DNA from: Hyphochytrium catenoides
Lineage: Eukaryota > Protista > Hyphochytriomycota
Length of the DNA: 41,689 bases
Assembly (NCBI GenBank): GCA_900088475.1
Contig: FLMG01000762.1
Location: 1-41,689 of the forward strand
Direction of reading: 5' to 3'
Below, piece by piece: positions 2,588 to 40,868 of the stretch (within the stretch, counting starts at the first letter, position 1; every line of letters begins with the position of its first letter). A model generated the notes under the pieces. That model saw nothing but the letters and a program-made list of their open reading frames with translations, made no database searches and was not told the origin of the DNA. A program made the translations under genes and the position numbers.

Positions 2588-3368
2588 GAGAGAGACAGAC
2601 CGACAGAGAGAGAGACAGACAGACCGACAGAGAGAGAGACCGACAGAGAGAGAGACAGACAGAGAGAAGGAGAGAAACTGTGAAAGAGGGGAGAGAAAGA
2701 GGGAAAGAGATAGAGGAGGGGAGGAAAAGGGGGTAAGAGAAAGAGAAAGAGAGTACGAAGGAAAGAAAGAGACGGAAGAGGAGAGGAGAACAATAGGTGA
2801 GGGAGACAGAGGATAGAAGAAGAAGCAGCAGTCAAGGAGAGTGAGAGGAGGCCGATGGACAGCGAAAACAAGAGAGTGAAGACAGAGAGAGACGAAACGA
2901 GAGAGAAGGAGAGGGACACACAGAGAGAGACATAGACAGAGAAAGACAGAGAGAGAGAGAGAGGTTATGTTGACAGACACATGAATAACAAGGAAGGTAA
3001 AAAGGATAGAGAAGACTGGAAGGAGAAGAAGAGAGAGAAGTGGGAGAAGAGAGAGAGAATGTGCTGAAGGAAAGAGACAATGAGAGAAAGATGATACTGA
3101 TGGTCAGATAAAAAAGAGCCCAAAGGCAGAGAATAGAGCAGGGTAACAAGAATAAGAGAGAGACCTCTACCTGGACATTCTCCTCTCCTTCTGGAGACGA
3201 AGAGAGAGGGAGAGCCGCTTGAGGAGGAGGAAAGGAAGGGCGAGACGGTGAGGAAGAAGAAGCTTGAGCAGCCGACCGCGATGAGGGGATGGTGGCCGGT
3301 TCTCTCTCAGAAGATGGTGAAGCAGAAGATCCTTTCCTCCAAAAGAGTGACTGCCCGATGCGCTTCAT
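1..3368 (-). CDS. Multi-exon membrane protein with a DUF2157-like region; 3' end runs off the window
   Basis: Exons at ~3368-3171, 2326-2277, ~1825-1675 (uncertain), 1350-1123, 834-664 and 344-239 have GT/AG ends. The spliced product reads ...LLQRAVEQQILSESQAATLWLFL...FRFLSIIN|VVYSCGALFILVSGVALVAMFWGSGELVSLVSLSY. This resembles the N-terminus of bacterial DUF2157-type membrane proteins (AVxxGIxSxxQAxxLWxFL...hhYYhGAL). The N-terminal Ser/Pro-rich exons are less certain. Confidence 0.6.
2545..2670. repeat. (GACA)n/(GA)n compound microsatellite in an intron
   Basis: Directly visible agacagacagac... tract interspersed with gagaga and gaccgacag units. Confidence 0.9.
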
Positions 3369-3744
3369 AGCAGGGAAGAATCGCGGATAGAGCGCACGAA
3401 AGAGGAAGACAGGGGGAGAGAGAGCGAGAGCGAGAGAGCGCGAGATGGGGTGGGAAGAGGGAGCAAGAGGAAGAGAGAGAGAGAGAAAAGATGAAGATGA
3501 GGGAGAAGGACCAGCAAGAGAGAAAGCGTAGAGGATGACGGAAAGAGACTCTAATGGGTAGAAGGGATAAACAGCTGCTGCTGCACCTCAGGAAGACAGA
3601 GGCTGGAGCCTGAGATTCATGGAGGCGACAACGACCTTCAGGAGCCACGTGTAGCTAGGAGAGATAACCGGGAGAAGAGAGAGGGGGAGGAGACGGTGCG
3701 CGTGTAATAAGCGGCGGCAAAAGACGCAGATATGTGTAGGAGAG

Positions 3745-3895
3745 GGAGAGAGAGACACCGAGAGAGCGAGAGAGAGAGAGCGAGAGAGAGAGGGAGGGAG
3801 AGAGAGAGAAAAAGAGAGAGAAAAAGAGAGAGAGAGAGAGAGAGANNNNNNNNNGAGAGAGAGAGAGAGAGGGAGGGAGAGAGAGAGAGAGAGGG
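3745..3895. repeat. (GA)n microsatellite with a short N gap (3846-3854) in the divergent intergenic region
   Basis: Directly visible. It lies between ATG 3368 (-) and ATG 3968 (+). Confidence 0.9.
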
Positions 3896-3967
3896 GAAGA
3901 AGGGTAAGAACACAGGAAAGATTTGTAAGAACAAGACAACAGCAACAGAAACAGAGAGAAACGAATC

Positions 3968-4783
3968 ATGCAGACCGCTAACGGCCTGAGGTTCCGCACG
4001 AAAGGTCAAAAAAGCGAAAGGGAAAGGTGTATGGGGAGAGTGAGAGAGAGAGAGAGAGAGAGGGAGGAGAGAGAGAGCAGAGGGAGAGAGAAAGAAGAGA
4101 GAGAGGTAGAGAAAAGAAGAGGAGAGGAGAGGAAAAGAGAGATAAGAAGGGGAGGATCACCACTGTTATAGTGATCTCGCTCTCTCTCTGTCTCTCTCTC
4201 TCTCCCCCTCTCTCTCTCTCTCTCTCTCTCTCTTTGCATCTCTCTCTCTCTGGACGCATACACCTTTCTCTCTTTCTTTCCGTGCTGTACAGCGGAGAGC
4301 TAGCAAAAGAGAAGTTATAGAGGTTAGTCTTAGCTTTCTCTCCCCTTGTTTGGTCCTCAGAGCTATGGATTGGGATATGAAAGAGACTGTGGACGTCCTT
4401 CAGTTGGAGGTTCTCTCTCTCCTCAGCACCATGCAAACCTTCGGTACGCTTTCTTTCTTACATTCTCTTCTTTTTCTCTTCATCTTGTCTCCCATCGTAG
4501 CTGCCTGCGTTCCTTTCTGTCTGTCTCTCTCTCTCTCGTCTTCTTTCTTTCTCTCCCTCTCTTCTCTCTCTCTTCTCTGTCTATCACTGTGTCCTTTCCC
4601 TCTGCTTGCTTTCTCTCTTCTCACACTGTTTATCGCCTAGACTCTGCCATGAGGTCGCGGTTGCAAGCGCTGAGCGGTCAACTGGGCCGCCTAGAGCGAC
4701 AGGTCGAGCTGCTTGAGAGACAAGAAGACCAAGAGACAGAAGGCGCAGAGAGACGTACAAACGCCAGTCTTACAAGCAAATGA
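3968..4783 (+). CDS. BRK1: BRICK1/HSPC300 subunit of the SCAR/WAVE complex
   Basis: Exons 3968-3990, 4361-4443 and 4641-4783 (GT-AG, phases consistent) give 82 aa: MQTANGLRAMDWDMKETVDVLQLEVLSLLSTMQTFDSAMRSRLQALSGQLGRLERQVELLERQ... This matches the BRK1 pattern DWxxxE...FDxxxRSRLxxLxxxLxxLERxxExxE. Confidence 0.85.
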
Positions 4784-5123: not shown

Positions 5124-16902
<11,779 letters not shown>

Positions 16903-31300: not shown

Positions 31301-33021
31301 CGAGATATCGTAGCACCAGTTTGTCGCTATGATGTCAGAAAGTAAGAATCAGAAAGAGCGTCAGGACAGCTATTCAAGGGCGATAAGTGACCGTCACTCC
31401 TCCCTACTTTCCTTAGCTTGTCCTTCCTTGCCTATCTAACTGCCCATATACCTTTACTGCTCGATTACGTACATGTAGGTATGTTATAGCCGGAAGACGG
31501 GAGTTGATCCTGAATTTGGCAACTTCCTTCAGATCCTCGTCCGAGACAGACGCAGGAACAGCAAAGACTCGAGGATAGGTAGGGCAAAGCGAGAAATCTT
31601 CATTCACCCTGGTAACGCGGAAGGGACTTGTTCCGCCATTCCCAATGGGACAGGAAGTGGCAGAAGAGCGAGAGGAACAGGATGACGATGGAGGAATCAA
31701 GCCCTGCCTTTGATACTCCATCATAGGGTCGTAGCAACGCCATCCTGCGCGGTCTGGAATGAAGGGCGAAGAAGGTCCCTGGAAAGCGAAAACGCTTGCG
31801 TCTCTCTGTCTCAACTTTCGTAAGCGTTGGAACACCTCGCTGTAGAATGACAAAGTGTAAGCGCGAGGTGAGGTGTGACATGAAGTAAGAAAGACGGCAT
31901 AACTCGTGACATTGAAGTGGTGGTGGTGAAGCCCTCCCAGATTTATGGCCTCGGCGACAGACAGAAGCTGAACTGATGAAAGAGGACGAAAAGAGGACAG
32001 GAAAGGAGATAGCGACGACAGAGAGAGAGAGAGAGAGAGAGAGATGAGAGAAAGGTAGATGTATCGTTAAGTCTCACCTTGAAGAGCAATCATAGGGGAA
32101 GCCAAATCGCAGTCTGAAAAAGCTCTTGGTGGTGACTTCCATGATAGAGATAACAGCGTCGACGTCCTGCCCGCTATATCCTTTAACCGAGGCAATTGAG
32201 CAGAGAGGAACGTCCAAAGAAAAATCCAGCCGCTCCGATGAAGGAGACGGACGATTCGCAGGGGAGTATAATCCCGACGGAGTGTTCTTCACAGCCAGGG
32301 GATTGATTAGAAAGAGCAGATTAGGGAGATGAACAGATAGGGAGCGGAGGATAAGAGGGAGAGACGGGTAGACAAAGACATCTAAGACGAAGCCCACTAG
32401 GTGAGTAACATAGCTAGAGAGGCTCGATGAACACTCAGAAGAGTAACAGCACAGACGACCGGGACGGCTTGTGATATTGGAAGCTGTCTGAAGGTGGAAC
32501 TCATCCAAAAGCAGTAACAAGAGGAGATCGCCCTACCCCAAAGGCTGCAAAGAGAATGCGATGATTGGTAAGAAACAAGGTGCCGGGTGTCGCGTTCTTC
32601 AGGTCTCCACACTTCTCTAAATGACTTCCGAGAGCATGGGCCTTGGCGATGATTCTTTCTCCTGTCAGTAGCTTTGACGACGGGTCCTCCAGTACCAGAT
32701 ACATGCTCTCAGACACGTAGGACGTCTAACCATGAGGACGTTTAGGGAGAGATAGAGAAGTTTACAGGGAGATGGTTAGCGTTGGTACCGGCAGGAGAGA
32801 TAAGATAGAGCTCTCGTCACTACCTGGACAGCGACATCTTCCGCATTAATCTCCGTCCAGGGCCCGTCTAGTCCCACCAGCTCATCGAGAGAGGATGCAG
32901 AATGAGAGGTACCAAGTTCATCACAATCGGAAGGCGTTGAAGCGTCTCTTTGCTCTTCGAAGTTCACACTTATGGCGTCTTGGCCGCGTACGAGAGTATT
33001 GAGCTGTCGCCGGTTTCCCAT
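28016..33021 (-). CDS. Myotubularin-family phosphoinositide 3-phosphatase (PH-GRAM, phosphatase, coiled coil) with an intact catalytic motif
   Basis: [12 protein letters not shown] (PH-GRAM), [32 protein letters not shown]|[26 protein letters not shown], catalytic [11 protein letters not shown] (~30320-30355), [50 protein letters not shown]. The first and last exons are approximate. Confidence 0.93.
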
Positions 33022-35050: not shown

Positions 35051-37751
35051 ATGATTGGGAGGGTACTGCGCCAGAGAGGGGCCTTCCTCATTCTTCTCTC
35101 GGCCTCATCTCTTCTTTCTTTCTCTCTATCGCTCTCTATTGAAGAAATTTATAACAAAGAGCACCTTCATGACATCTACCACCGCTCAGATGGAAGCGGA
35201 ATACCGCGAACCAATGCCGCGATAGCTCTCTATGAGCCTTCTTGTGGGCACTCCTTGTCTCAGCTGGGATTCTCTAGCATATCGTCAGAGCTTCAGTTTC
35301 TGACTCTTACTCACGACTGGAAAACAAGCAGAGCCGTCTCTTGGTATAAATGGACGGAGGATTTCGATCTTACGCGTGATTTCGATGTGACGGTCTGTCC
35401 CAGCATCTACTACCTGCCTAAAAATGCAAGCCTGAAGCCAGTGAAGTGGGACAACCAGGGAAGGTACGGTAGATCTCTTGGTATTTCCGTTGGCATTAGG
35501 CCGTCACATGTCTTAATATCCTGTGACTTCTTCGCCGCTCTACGACCTCATGGCACACAGCGTACTGCCGCGTAAGAGGTGTGCGTTAGCTTACCTCTTG
35601 TGGAGACAAGTTAACTGTCTGCTCTCGCTCTTGCCGCTTCCCTACTATCACCTTTGAGACCTTCGTCATCTATTCTCTCTCTTTCAGCTTGTTTATCTCT
35701 TCTGTTCTCTGACTAAATTGCTGCCATTTCCTTTGTGTCAATCGGTGCTATTGCACCCACGCCAGTGGTGCTTTGCTTGACTCGTCTAAGCTATTTTTGC
35801 TCTGTAGATACACTGACTGGATCTGGTCCCAGCTGAAGCGACGAATATCAATCGTCAATGAATGGGACAGTCCTGTGAAGCTTCTACGGGCGGACTTCGG
35901 CTCTGAATCTGTTGAGAGCTTTGGTCTTATTGCCACTTTCCAACCAGGAAAGACTCCGACTGAACTTGACTCTTATGCTACTCAGGTACACAGGCAAATT
36001 TGAACTCCTTTCGGCTTGACTTCATACCTTTGTCTCACCTTCGGGCCATGCCAGTTGAAAGCTCCGTCGCTTTGTTAACTCATAGAGTCTCTTCCTCTAG
36101 ATCATTATTGCGGTTGATGAGTCTAGCACTCAGTACCTTGGCCACCTCGTAGTAGATGAAGGAGAGACCCAACTGAGAGTTTCTAAAGATGTGAAGTCCC
36201 AGCCTCTCTCTGCCTGGTGGGCAGAGGAGAGAGCAAAGTTTAAGAAGGCTCTTGATGTTTGGGGGAACAACATGTGGTCACATGCTATGAGACATCTTAT
36301 GAACTACAAGGTGAGGAGGCGGTCCACTCAGAGATCTATCAGGCCCTCAGTTTAGTTTGTTCTTGCGAGAAGCAGCTCTTCTCTTGACTTCGATCAAGCT
36401 TGGCACCTGGCAAGAAAACAGCGATTGCAGCTTGCTGTTGACTTTGGCTTCCCTCTCTCTTTNNNNNNNNNNNNNNNNNNNNNNNNNNNNNNNNNNNNNN
36501 NNNNNNNNNNNNNNNNACTACTACGACACTCACAAGAGCAAGTCTCTCCTCGAGGACTGGCATCCTTACGGCACTCAAATCAACTATGACGCAGTCACGA
36601 CGAGGATGGTAGAACTGCCACACGAAACGAAACTCAAAGTTGGAGAGGTACGAGAGAGGCCCAAGTTAGGTCTAGGAAGTAGAAAGGGTCGGAAAGGGAG
36701 AGGAGAAAGATGGAACAAGCCAAAGGCGTTCCTCGCAACTCAAACGCTGCTGTTTTCCGCTGACCTCTCTATTGTCTCGAATGGCCAGATCATCCGTCCG
36801 GAGCTGGAAGCCTGGAGCAACCAGGAGCTAGTATTTGCTGCCCTTTACGGAATCAGAGAATACTTTAACGGTGGTGTTCTGAAGAGCCACGTGGACAGGG
36901 TGGAGACGCATGTCATCTCAGCCATCCTGAATGTTGATCAGGTAAAGAACGCTCTTTTGGCTGAGCCTGTTTGACCTATTTTGAGTTGGATTGCTCCGCC
37001 CGGGTAGAGGGCGGTCCACTTTGTTCATCCATCCTCTATGAGGTCCTCCCTCTCCGCCCTATTTCTCGTGCCGGACACTATCACCTCGCTTCTGTCCACT
37101 TAGCCTTATAGCTCTTCCCTAGCACTACTGACGCTCATCCGCTTTCACTTGTAGGACGTCGAGGAGGATTGGCTCCTGGAGGTGATAAACTATGAGGGAG
37201 ACAAAGTCTTTATTCCAATGGAGCCCGGAGACATGGTATTCTATGAGAGCAGCAAGGTTAGTACTCCTGGACTCTCTGATAGGTCTTACCCTACTGCCGC
37301 AGCTTTCTTTCTAGTCTACTGGTCTTCGCTCCGTATATTCTTTTTGCATATCTTATCCAGTGCATGCTAGCTCCAGAAACAGCCCTTGGAGAAAGACGCT
37401 TCTCTCGACGACCTTGTCTTTTGCTCCGAACTGCCTGCGTCCACCGGTTCTCTCCATAGTGTGATTGACAAAGCTGTCTTCACGACTTTCGTCTGCCCAA
37501 AATACCCTCCACAGCTCATCCATGGCCGTCCCAAGCCACTCAAAGGCAAGTTCTATGCGAACGCCTTCCTTCACTTCCGGCCCACTTTATGGTCCCAGTA
37601 CAGCTTGTCACCAATCAACATATTCCGTACACCAGATCAGCAGATTCCACTTCGGCCTTTCAACGTCATAGGGAAGCGACTAGATGATATTGCCGACCAT
37701 GGTTCGGCATGGCTCAAGAGCATTGAGGCTGCCCAGAAAGAGGAGCTTTAG
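35051..37751 (+). CDS. ER-resident 2OG-Fe(II) dioxygenase (prolyl-4-hydroxylase-like) with thioredoxin-like and VHL-beta-like N-terminal domains and C-terminal KEEL
   Basis: Exons ~35051-35463, 35809-35986, 36101-36310, (gap)-36647, 36789-36941, 37155-37256 and 37515-37751. Hydrophobic signal peptide; LYGIREY...LKSHVDRVETHVISAILNVDQ (HxD); MEPGDMVFYESSK|LIHGRP (distal His); YANAFLHFRP; ends QKEEL*. Confidence 0.88.
36463..36516. other. Assembly gap covering an acceptor and part of an exon of the oxygenase gene
   Basis: The N run is preceded by a pyrimidine tract and followed directly by coding sequence (YYDTHKSK). Confidence 0.9.
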
Positions 37752-38344: not shown

Positions 38345-40868
38345 CTAAAGAACGATCCTCTCGTCGTCTACACTGTCCCTCTCTCTTCCTTCACCAGAGC
38401 CCTCAAAAGGAGGAGGAGAAGAAGGCGTGCTGACAAACTTGACTTGGAGCAAACAGGCTGTTCCTCCAGCTAGGGTAAAAGCTATGGCAACGACGAGGAA
38501 CAGCCAGCTGCTAAGATCCACGCCTTGGAAGACTGACGACACGCAGGTCACTAGAGCTTGAGGAATCACAATAAGCAGATTGAGCACACCCATCTGTACC
38601 CCTGTTGGAAGAGTTAGTTGGACGGCAGACAGACGATGCCGTTAGTCAAAATAGCCCTCGACAAGCCATAGAATGGCAATAAAGGAGCAGTCCACAGGAG
38701 GAAGTTTAGCAGGAACTAGAGGCACTCACGCGATGAAAGAGAAGACAGGCGACTAGTTCTTAACGTAGATAACGTAGAGTCAGGAAAAATGTGAGAGACG
38801 CAGAGCAAAAGTTTTCACAATTGAGGGCCAAACGAAAAGCAGCCAAGGAAAGCCACCAAGATAAGCCTGTTCAGTTCTTACCGGTGTCGTTCTCCCTATC
38901 CGTCTGAGACCTAATGTAGGCACCGACCAGGGCAAAGGGGAAGGAGTTGATGGCCACTATAGGAAGACATATCATGGAGAGCAGGATGGCACCTAATGCC
39001 ACCTTCCCGGATGAGAATGAGAGGAGGTAAAACAGACCTGCTCCCCATAGCAACATTCCCGCATACAGAAAGCGAATGGAGACAGCACGGTAGGAGAGAA
39101 GACATGCGAGACAGAGACCGACTAAGGTTTGTCCTGCGTACGCCACCAGATCCACTGTGTCGTTCATCTTAACGCCCTGGTTGTAACTCTCAACCTGATC
39201 GAGTGAGGTACATTCTCGCGCGCTCTCTTGCACTTCTCGCTGAGTACAGCCGGGGTAGGCTATCTTTGCCCACCACGTGACTTTAAAAGTCCAAAGACAA
39301 AAAAGACCAATCCAAGAGAAGAACTGGACGACAGCAATCCTTACAAGGGACCGGGGCATAAAGCGCACTGAGGAAGAGGAATCAGAAAAAGTAGAACGTT
39401 AGAGAGCCCGTAAACCACCTATGTGGAGCAATGAAATGGTGAGGAGAGAGAGAAGAGAGAGCATCGGCGAAAGAAAGCAACCACTGTTGGGACCATGACC
39501 GCGAAAGACAGACCGACTATACTTTCTTAGCTGGACGATAAACATAGTAAACAGAGCATCAGGCACAGCAGGGATACCTGCTATGAAAGACTGCTTGAGA
39601 GGCTCGACACAGCCAGGTTTCCTAAGATAGAGCGGCCGTATGTAAGGCCTTTCCTTAGCAAGGATGCAGGACAAAGGGATGACGATAAGGTTCAAGCCCG
39701 TTGCGAGAGCCACGACAGGAAGCGCTTTCTCTCCTTTCTCCTCAGCAAATGGAAGCATCATAGCTGCTCCAATGATCCCCCCAATGCCTTGAAATCCTGC
39801 TGCCATTAGTTGACCCACAGCCTGTTGTCTGGACGAAGACAGGTCCGAGATGAGCGCTCTGAGAGGGGTCTGGATAACGTTGATGGTCGCGTCCATCCCA
39901 ATAAACATTAACAGAGCAAAGTATTGAGAAGCCTGGGTGAGGCCAAAGAAGTAGCGGGATGCTGCATAGAGAAGAGAGAAGAAGACGAAAGAGAACAGAC
40001 CGCCAATCATGAATGGTCTTCTCCTTCCATAGCTGCTCTCACAACGATCAGACGCGGCACCAACGAGAGGAGCTACAATGAAGCCTGAACAAGGTAGTGA
40101 GAGGGCAGACGATACGGGTCAGTCAAAGGAGCTAGACAGAACGAGACACGTTGAACGCGAGGAGCTACAATGAAGCCTGAACAAGGTAGTAAGAGGGCAG
40201 ACGATACGGGTCAGTCAAAGGAGCTAGACACAACGAGACACGTTGCGAAAGCGAGAAGAGATAGAAAATGAAAGAGTCTGATCTCTTCGGAGCTCCCATA
40301 GAGACCAAGAGAAGAGCACGGAGAGCGCTCCCAGAGCAGAAACCTGGAACAAAAGGTAACAGAGCTGAAAGTGGTCGAGAAACGTGGGAGACAGACAGAT
40401 AGGCAAAGGAGAGAAAGAGTGAGAGGAGACACACCAGAACGCGGCGTTGAAAGGGTTAAAGAAGCAAGGGAATGGTGAAGAGCCAGAGGTCTTCTGGTGT
40501 CATTCTCCACCTGTAATAGGCCCCCAAATCCAGGTAAGAGCCGCTAGATCTGCCGACATGCCTAGATATTCCATGTACGGCTGCGTCAGGGAAAACTCAG
40601 AGACCCAGAGGCACTGCACGCCCACCCAGGCAGAGGTGACTACCGCCAGTCGCCAGAGAGGATAATCTTCCCCTGTTCTGAAGCGTGCCCGTCCTTCTCC
40701 CTCATCTCTCTCTCCAGCTCCTCCATGGTAGAAGACAGGTGTTGCTGGCGTCTCCCTGGCCTTCACCTTGCCTTCACTGCGGATGTAGCTGAGCGCCAGA
40801 CAAGGGAAATCCGAGGATGACCGCGTGTCCAAGGTATCCCGGAAAGAGTGAGCAATGGTTAACTCCAT
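38345..40868 (-). CDS. Sucrose/H+ symporter-like transporter (SUT/SUC, SLC45; GPH/MFS)
   Basis: Exons 40868-40512, 40084-39578, ~39367-38882 and ~38601-38345. Motifs: GVQCLWVSEFSLTQPYMEYLG...WIWGPITG|FIVAPLVGAASDRCESSYGRRRPF, INVIQTPLRALISD, VQFFSWIGLF, SFPFALVG, GVQMGVLNLLIVIPQ. Confidence 0.93.
40062..40245. repeat. 92-bp tandem duplication spanning an intron/exon junction
   Basis: Copies 40062-40153 and 40154-40245 differ at three positions. Confidence 0.95.

Follow-up and report, generated by a model that had tools for sequence, protein, structure and literature searches.

We examined a 41,689-nucleotide stretch of the genome of Hyphochytrium catenoides (Hyphochytriomycota; assembly GCA_900088475.1, contig FLMG01000762.1), referred to below in its entirety as the window, in which positions 35051–37751 of the forward strand appear to hold a single nuclear gene of at least seven GT-AG exons with a product of approximately 500 residues. 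The predicted protein is a soluble enzyme of the endoplasmic reticulum (ER) lumen, in which a thioredoxin fold and a VHL-beta-like sandwich precede a 2-oxoglutarate (2OG)/Fe(II) oxygenase domain in the same chain. We regard this as reasonably probable, a judgement that applies jointly to the single gene, the soluble ER-lumenal enzyme, the order of its domains and the roles of its modules.

The ATG at 35051 is preceded by an in-frame stop. Exon 1 (35051–35463), placed by GT-AG sites and phase continuity and ending in phase 2, opens with a signal-peptide-like N-terminus (residues 1–29, 35051–35137) carrying a basic n-region, a hydrophobic core and SLSLS. The rest of the exon (35138–35463) encodes a thioredoxin-fold domain without a CxxC motif, recognized from an AlphaFold2 model and fold searches, with C65 in YEPSCGHS and C116-P117 in CPSIYY. 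Exon 2 (35808–35985) supplies the last thioredoxin-fold helix (DWIWSQLKRR), followed by the opening half of the VHL-beta-like sandwich, in which an invariant Asn (IVN) and an S-Y-A-T-Q stretch occur. The second half of the sandwich (approximately 36101–36199) begins exon 3 (36101–36310), which continues into a helical linker with a WSHAMRHLMN motif conserved in homologs and ends in phase 0. Intron 3 and the 5′ part of exon 4 share the interval 36311–36516, where an assembly gap at 36463–36516 hides the start of that exon. The visible part of exon 4 (36517–36647) encodes the N-terminal helical part of the catalytic domain (YYDTHK...WHPYGTQINYD...VELP), and the catalytic core follows in exon 5 (36789–36941), with YGIREY and the H-V-D iron ligands, and in exon 6 (37155–37256; WLLEV...PGDMVFYESSK). 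Exon 7 (37515–37751) contributes the second His ligand (LIHGRP), a Lys at +9, a C-terminal extension and KEEL before the stop that ends at 37751. The first-pass annotation of this locus, a reading of the letters by themselves, had described a signal peptide, a thioredoxin-like segment, a beta-rich segment at 35830–36180, a 2OG-Fe(II) domain with HVD...H ligands and a C-terminal KEEL. Each of these is found: the thioredoxin-like segment is the ‘ALYEPSCGHS ... CPSIYYLPK’ of exon 1, the beta-rich segment lies where it was placed and corresponds to exon 2 plus the first half of exon 3, and the catalytic signature Y...HVD...H...K is intact across exons 5 and 7.

Both ends of the protein point to the secretory pathway. 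The N-terminus combines basic residues with a hydrophobic core (Kyte-Doolittle 11-mer maximum of 2.3) and the small-residue SLSLS region, and a hydrophobic stretch precedes the N-terminal domain (N-domain) in 41 of 54 relatives. The C-terminus is KEEL here and RDDL in a paralog described below. Tails of the [DE]L kind close 15 of the 23 relatives whose beta domain lies before the catalytic domain and 8 of the 10 in which it lies after, and most proteins without such a tail look truncated. Nearly all close homologs end in KDEL, HDEL, RDEL, REEL, KIEL or RSEL. With a signal-peptide-like start and a KDEL-type tail, as is required of members of the PDI family, the protein is predicted to be soluble and ER-lumenal.

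The gene belongs to a sparse and largely unannotated family. Searched against 1.84 billion proteins, a profile built from exon 1 and its paralog matched no more than 18 representatives; nine of these are 470–556 residues long, match at their N-termini and share the order seen in the window, namely a hydrophobic N-terminus, the N-domain, a beta segment, a linker and an oxygenase domain. The closest homologs come from ENA or Logan environmental assemblies, and several are uninterrupted open reading frames (ORFs) on long environmental contigs. A word search with the homolog alignment raised the number of relatives to 103, and local hidden Markov models (HMMs) run over 119 collected proteins placed the N-domain in about 60 and the beta domain in 39. 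We call proteins with the beta domain between the N-domain and the catalytic domain, as in this gene, I-type, and those with the beta domain after the catalytic domain (11 proteins) C-type. The family as a whole, in which the position of the beta domain varies, is represented in an annelid, in chlorarachniophytes and diatoms, in one foraminifer and one dinoflagellate, and in many environmental transcripts. The annelid Dimorphilus gyrociliatus has the window’s domain order (I-type) in an ‘uncharacterized protein’ (CAD5118666.1/A0A7I8VQY3), C-type members occur in the chlorarachniophytes Amorphochlora amoebiformis (GAB5370500.1) and Norrisiella sphaerica (a transcript), and transcripts of Bolivina argentea (foraminifer) and Polykrikos kofoidii (dinoflagellate) also encode family members. 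A search by shape added diatom clusters, in which a ‘Fe2OG dioxygenase domain-containing protein’ of about 540 residues contains the beta module. These named members share the catalytic family and an N-terminal thioredoxin-like domain with the H. catenoides gene, usually along with a K/HDEL-like tail; in the chlorarachniophyte proteins, unlike in this gene, the beta domain follows the catalytic domain and the VHL pocket residues are retained. No family member is characterized, and most are without any Pfam annotation. One environmental contig (L009, ENA ERZ25069296) holds tandem intronless members, genes 3001–4671 and 5330–6742. The pair comprises P0005 and a gene of 470 residues, probably P0004; in P0004 both the region of the second His and the ER tail have been lost.

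Three genes in the H. catenoides genome have this catalytic domain. The paralog (L006, G000:C3942:15800-19600) has the same seven-exon structure, exon order and phases, with exons at L006 922–1305, 1537–1710, 1769–1984, 2117–2329, 2399–2551, 2632–2733 and 2802–3044 and no gap in exon 4. It is 50–75% identical to the window gene in most exons, 50% in exon 3 and 31% in exon 2. A 40-N gap lies upstream of the paralog’s start (L006 625–664). The exons of the window are colinear with this paralog and with the intronless homologs, and together with the ER-retrieval-type tail this bears out the earlier proposal that three modules are joined in one lumenal protein and speaks against 5′ and 3′ exons that belong to separate transcripts. 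A bacterial contaminant was ruled out by the spliceosomal introns, the paralog and the eukaryotic context.

Sequence searches and folds used exons or single domains one by one, by reference. Scanned singly against Pfam, the exons returned nothing but a chance Myb match, and PDB sequence searches made with profiles of exons 1 and 3 and with exon 7 yielded chance matches or none. Against the family’s own catalytic HMM, exons 4–7 match colinearly over positions 30–184, the visible part of exon 4 covering positions 30–70 (E 2.7e-8), exon 5 positions 74–123 (E 2.5e-18), exon 6 positions 125–159 (E 4.3e-13) and exon 7 positions 160–184 (E 1.6e-9). Across 50 family sequences, a set of core residues that includes Y99, H108, D110 and H163-G-R is invariant or close to it. 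The window has them all: for the iron triad and its upstream Tyr, exon 5 gives REY...HVD and exon 7 gives LIHGRP. Nine of the 50 family sequences match Pfam PF13640 at E<=0.01, below its threshold, and some more distant relatives carry precomputed PF13640 matches. Language-model features of the protein atlas lead, at 0.93, to clusters named ‘Prolyl 4-hydroxylase alpha subunit Fe2OG dioxygenase’. From its sequence, the catalytic domain can safely be called a 2OG/Fe(II) oxygenase of the prolyl 4-hydroxylase (P4H)/PHD-like (2OG-FeII_Oxy_3) kind.

The N-domain could be modelled from the window’s own letters. An AlphaFold2 model of residues 29–137 (window 35135–35461), built with 56 family sequences, reached a pLDDT (predicted local distance difference test) of 92.2; the last helix of the thioredoxin fold lies in exon 2, outside the modelled segment. 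In a Foldseek search of the PDB, all of the top 50 matches were thioredoxins or catalytic a-type domains of the PDI family (TMq 0.48–0.67), and an independent alignment against representatives (VIA) returned only thioredoxin folds, at Z 8.4–9.9 over about 88–91 residues. Exon 1 itself matches the family N-domain HMM at E 4.6e-27, and a weak language-model lead also points toward the thioredoxin fold.

The beta domain of the window is split by intron 2, and we folded the corresponding segment of a homolog (P0016:140-228) as a proxy, with 37 family sequences; exon 2 of the window matches the family beta-domain HMM at E 1.3e-10. The proxy model has seven strands and a pLDDT of 94.6. All of its top 50 Foldseek matches were human pVHL (TMq 0.66–0.73, 20–23% identity), and VIA gave pVHL at Z 11.6 and 11.3 (root-mean-square deviation 2.8 Å over 82 residues, 21% identity), with the next fold at 8.2 and the rest at or below 7.2. 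The N-terminal segments thus model as the two folds that had been proposed for them, thioredoxin and VHL-beta, the latter on a homolog. Sequence signals run in the same direction at lower strength. Pfam VHL (PF01847) was the only family to match more than one of the 37 beta segments, matching seven (best E 7.9e-4); none of the 37 reached its gathering cut-off of 21 bits, and the window’s exons had no match to it. The profiles of beta domains before and after the catalytic domain align with each other in hhalign at a probability of 91% (E 9e-7). Searched against the PDB, the mixed beta-domain profile found idealized de novo Ig designs, not VHL, and the profile of the pocket-keeping domains that follow the catalytic domain found VHL only at E ~0.1. 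Homology to VHL is argued for by the fold together with these recurring weak Pfam and profile signals; sequence by itself would not establish it. The best PDB match of the pocket-keeping profile was a Legionella Dot/Icm effector (6vve/6vvc, E 0.012) with the same F-x-N...W motif, and this effector may carry a VHL-beta-like module. Among bacterial ESM Atlas clusters (Planctomycetota, Verrucomicrobiota and Pseudomonadota), Pfam VHL domains are fused to DPP-IV/S9 prolyl peptidases, sialate esterase and LRR proteins, and such fusions would fit a general proline-peptide-binding role of the VHL module.

Together, these features lead us to propose an ER hydroxylase built, in order, from a signal peptide, a thioredoxin fold, a VHL-beta-like sandwich, a helical linker, a 2OG/Fe(II) oxygenase and KEEL. 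The enzyme would hydroxylate proteins of the secretory pathway, most likely at proline, and its own KEEL would supply ER retention directly. Neither N-terminal module would be catalytic, and both would act in cis. The thioredoxin-fold domain would hold client proteins or help to keep the enzyme in solution, a part like the redox-independent one that PDI plays in animal collagen P4H, and the sandwich would dock a peptide feature of the substrate, bringing it to the catalytic cleft. Because its pocket residues are replaced, as detailed below, the sandwich would not be a hydroxyproline reader in this copy. We lean toward this scheme, with the roles it assigns, as the probable one and hold it with moderate confidence.

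Several observations weigh against it. The catalytic-domain assignment draws its support from the level of sequence, and there the best close homolog scores 23.6 bits against PF13640 (E 1e-4), short of the gathering cut-off of 27 bits, and the best PDB match, the Pseudomonas prolyl hydroxylase 4iw3, comes at E 0.05 over the HxD..H core, which is not significant by itself. The position nine residues after the second His, where enzymes of this kind have a basic residue (at about +9 or +10) that binds the C5 carboxylate of 2OG, is K in the window and K or R in the family, but N or E in some members. With this residue variable, binding of 2OG may differ from that in classical P4Hs, and a nearly invariant R two residues past the second His could substitute. 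The beta fold derives from homolog P0016 and not from the window’s own residues, and a C65–C116 disulfide, which we propose below, is read from co-variation. The locus was found in DNA runs only and in no RNA run, and splicing is judged from the GT-AG sites, phase continuity, homology and the confinement of indels to introns.

We infer prolyl specificity from this same catalytic domain, and its divergence (Pfam score below cut-off, a sole PDB match at E 0.05, a variable residue at His+9) leaves room for another substrate. The enzyme might instead hydroxylate lysyl, aspartyl or asparaginyl residues, or its substrate might be a glycan or a small molecule, and ‘prolyl hydroxylase’ would then be an annotation habit for domains of the PF13640 type; relatives are named prolyl 4-hydroxylase by their sources, and these names are automatic. 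Set against this, the nearest recognizable relatives by every method are prolyl-hydroxylase-type domains, and the attached module is VHL-beta-like, a domain that bacterial clusters of similar shape carry fused to proline-specific S9/DPP-IV peptidases. We take a non-prolyl substrate to be a real possibility, if a somewhat unlikely one.

The first-pass annotation had called the N-terminal module PDI-like, which holds for the thioredoxin fold and not for the active site. None of the 56 family N-domains has a CxxC motif, the window having CGHS, and neither the Pfam thioredoxin/PDI models nor PDB thioredoxin/PDI sequences gave a significant match, the best being a single member against Thioredoxin_2 at E 0.077. 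A Cys does persist at the first CxxC position, and it does so in company: the C65 position and the C116 position, just before the cis-Pro, both hold Cys in 50 of the 56 members and both lack it in four. These two positions are neighbours in thioredoxin folds. Together, the absence of CxxC, the co-varying Cys pair and the lack of a significant Pfam or PDB match suggest that the module is redox-inactive and probably pinned by a C65–C116 disulfide. The competing view is a redox-active N-domain, either PDI-like or of the single-Cys type represented by ERp44, in which mixed disulfides between C65 and clients would couple thiol chemistry or retention to hydroxylation. It is favoured by the Cys at the first CxxC position, by a Pro at the cis-Pro position in 44 of 56 members, and by structural matches that are best to the catalytic a-type domains of ERdj5, P5 and PDI. 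The two residues that follow the Cys are not conserved, however, and co-occurrence of the two cysteines fits a structural pair. A redox-active domain is on this evidence decidedly unlikely, and we retain the redox-inactive holding module.

It had also been proposed that the protein could be a writer-plus-reader system. Spelled out, hydroxyproline made by the oxygenase would be bound by the VHL-beta-like domain in the same chain, for processivity, product retention or quality control. The VHL beta domain reads hydroxyproline, and in pVHL–HIF structures the pocket has W88 and W117 as its walls, while the hydroxyproline hydroxyl is bound by S111 and H115. We placed the pocket columns by alignment to VHL residues 72–122; Y98 falls in a loop without reliable alignment. 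All 11 C-type domains retain F76, N78, W88 and H115, along with S111 (as T or S) and W117 (as F), a pattern that indicates selection on the VHL pocket within this enzyme family, and here a VHL-style hydroxyproline reader is a live hypothesis. In the I-type domains of 26 relatives, by contrast, the structural Asn (VHL N78) is the sole invariant residue. At VHL 88, 111, 115 and 117 the window reads R, S, Q and I, against M, I, Q and V in the paralog. With the pocket residues replaced, hydroxyproline reading is not supported for this gene: of the VHL-type module that had been described, the VHL-beta fold stands, by homolog proxy, and the W88, H115 and W117 equivalents are lost, so that the pocket on which a reader would depend survives in C-type relatives only. 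Binding of hydroxyproline by any of these domains is in addition putative. We consider a same-chain reader very unlikely in this copy, and keep to the docking role proposed above. The same genome does hold VHL-like domains with several of these residues. The third catalytic-family gene (L011, G000:C1556:10751-13915) has a VHL-beta-like exon at 1471–1695, upstream of its catalytic exons (C1556:12904-13887), with W, H and F at VHL 88, 115 and 117 and G at 111. A separate 590-residue ORF (34–1806 of L010, G000:C3010:3698-6883), picked up by the C-type beta-domain profile, is unrelated, with hydrophobic segments, an fn3 domain (E 7.5e-8) and no oxygenase domain; its C-terminal VHL beta domain is above the Pfam cut-off (25.6 bits) and shows the T..H.F pocket motif in full.

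The N-terminal modules and the catalytic domain are separated by the assembly gap. Contigs assembled by Logan from two DNA runs, X1 (record 3, 1162 nt) and X2 (record 12, 1104 nt), bridge it and place 212 letters between 36462 and 36517, where the assembly has 54 N; the two runs are of one sample, possibly the assembly’s own data, and their bridging is not independent support. A third run from another sample, X3, has loose ends at both sides of the gap; a further run, X4, yielded no contigs at the locus. At the right side, the 30 letters before 36517 are in frame without a stop and extend the protein as ..PAEAYSLLKN-YYDTHK, which aligns with PEEAYNILKS-FYDKNK of the paralog. The complete, gap-free exon 4 of the paralog begins QPPLTPRFTEQGYLKTRMPEEAYNILKSFYDK (also quoted as QPPLTPRFTEQGY). 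The in-frame letters of X3 and this complete exon suggest that the gap conceals some 27–29 codons of exon 4 and that its two sides belong to one gene in frame. CT-rich simple sequence stands at the left edge of the gap (window 36440–36462; X3 loose end CTCGTTTTTCTCTCTCCCGCTCTCTCTCTC) and probably caused the assembly to break here; CT/GA low-complexity runs of this sort are frequent between the genes of the window. The distribution of read variants follows the exon model, with all eight indels within the gene falling in introns, and with 15 substitutions in 1424 exon bases (8 synonymous) versus 23 in 1223 visible intron bases. That two neighbouring genes or a mis-join at the gap have produced this architecture, as the position of the gap and the failure to find RNA runs with the locus might suggest, is scarcely credible in view of the bridging contigs, the same exon order and phases in the gap-free paralog, and intronless homologs that encode the same order in one ORF.

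Animal collagen P4H is an alpha2beta2 enzyme in which the PDI beta subunit supplies thioredoxin folds and KDEL retention, and it needs PDI in trans for solubility and ER retention. The H. catenoides protein resembles it as a predicted ER-lumenal 2OG/Fe(II) oxygenase with HxD...H ligands, a thioredoxin-fold partner and a KDEL-type signal, and Foldseek matched the window’s N-domain to, among others, PDI chains in the crystal structure of C-P4H-II (7zsc). It differs in having one thioredoxin-fold domain, without CxxC, in the same chain, versus a four-domain PDI in trans. Unlike the collagen P4H alpha subunit, it also has no N-terminal dimerization or TPR-like peptide-binding domain, and thioredoxin and VHL-beta-like folds precede its catalytic domain, the sandwich occupying the site of the absent domains; similarity between the catalytic domains is weak. 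With the pVHL beta domain (Pfam PF01847) it shares the seven-strand sandwich (by family proxy), the invariant Asn equivalent to N78 and a PG turn. It is unlike pVHL in being lumenal rather than cytosolic and in the replacement of W88, H115 and W117; neither a VHL alpha domain nor an Elongin-binding box was seen, with no dedicated comparison made of the helical linker that follows the sandwich. The N-domain is like thioredoxin and PDI a-type domains (ERdj5 Trx4, P5 a0, thioredoxin) in its fold, in the Cys at the first CxxC position and in the Pro at the cis-Pro position, and unlike them in that a second active-site Cys is absent from all 56 members and an extra conserved Cys stands before the cis-Pro, at 6–19% identity.

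The kinds of domain involved are all known, and VHL-beta domains are already catalogued by Pfam in bacteria. What is new, as far as the literature searched extends, is their combination with an ER oxygenase and the split between domains that keep the pocket and domains that have lost it. A single-chain enzyme joining P4H with VHL-beta or P4H with thioredoxin was not found in the literature searched, nor was the split, and the incomplete coverage of that search makes this weak evidence of absence. The first-pass annotation knew of no characterized example, and this holds for characterized proteins; the architecture itself is present in many public sequences, unannotated or labelled ‘uncharacterized’. 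The result is an unannotated family, spread across several eukaryotic groups, in which a thioredoxin fold, a VHL-type sandwich and a P4H-like oxygenase would share one ER-resident chain. It would offer a single-chain system, probably easier to express, in which to study what accessory modules do for ER hydroxylases, and the H. catenoides gene is a candidate modifier of Pro-rich secreted proteins. For this copy a more modest function is expected, the hydroxylation of proteins in the ER by an enzyme with two modules for docking or chaperoning.

The literature searched regards the reading of hydroxyproline by pVHL as an invention of animals (holozoans). The pocket-kept and pocket-lost domains form a natural pair for testing whether VHL-type hydroxyproline recognition predates animals. 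As a tentative and rather unlikely scenario, the VHL-beta-like module could be an ancient Pro/Hyp peptide-binding domain acting in cis with the secretory prolyl hydroxylases of protists, with the cytosolic pVHL of animals as a later offshoot; C-type enzymes would then read their own product, and the type found in this gene would have been re-tuned to another peptide feature.

The neighbours of the gene are both functionally unrelated to it. Upstream, on the reverse strand, is a myotubularin-like phosphatase exon (window 31413–31853; PF06602, E 6e-22), and downstream, also on the reverse strand, an MFS sugar-transporter-like gene (window 38871–40868; weak MFS_2 match). Within the gene, the three DNA runs all yield contigs that depart from the assembly at window 35842, 35859 and 37732–37733; two of these differences are synonymous and one changes Ala to Gly directly before KEEL. 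Many further sites differ between samples at 90–95% likeness, which suggests diverged haplotypes or strains.

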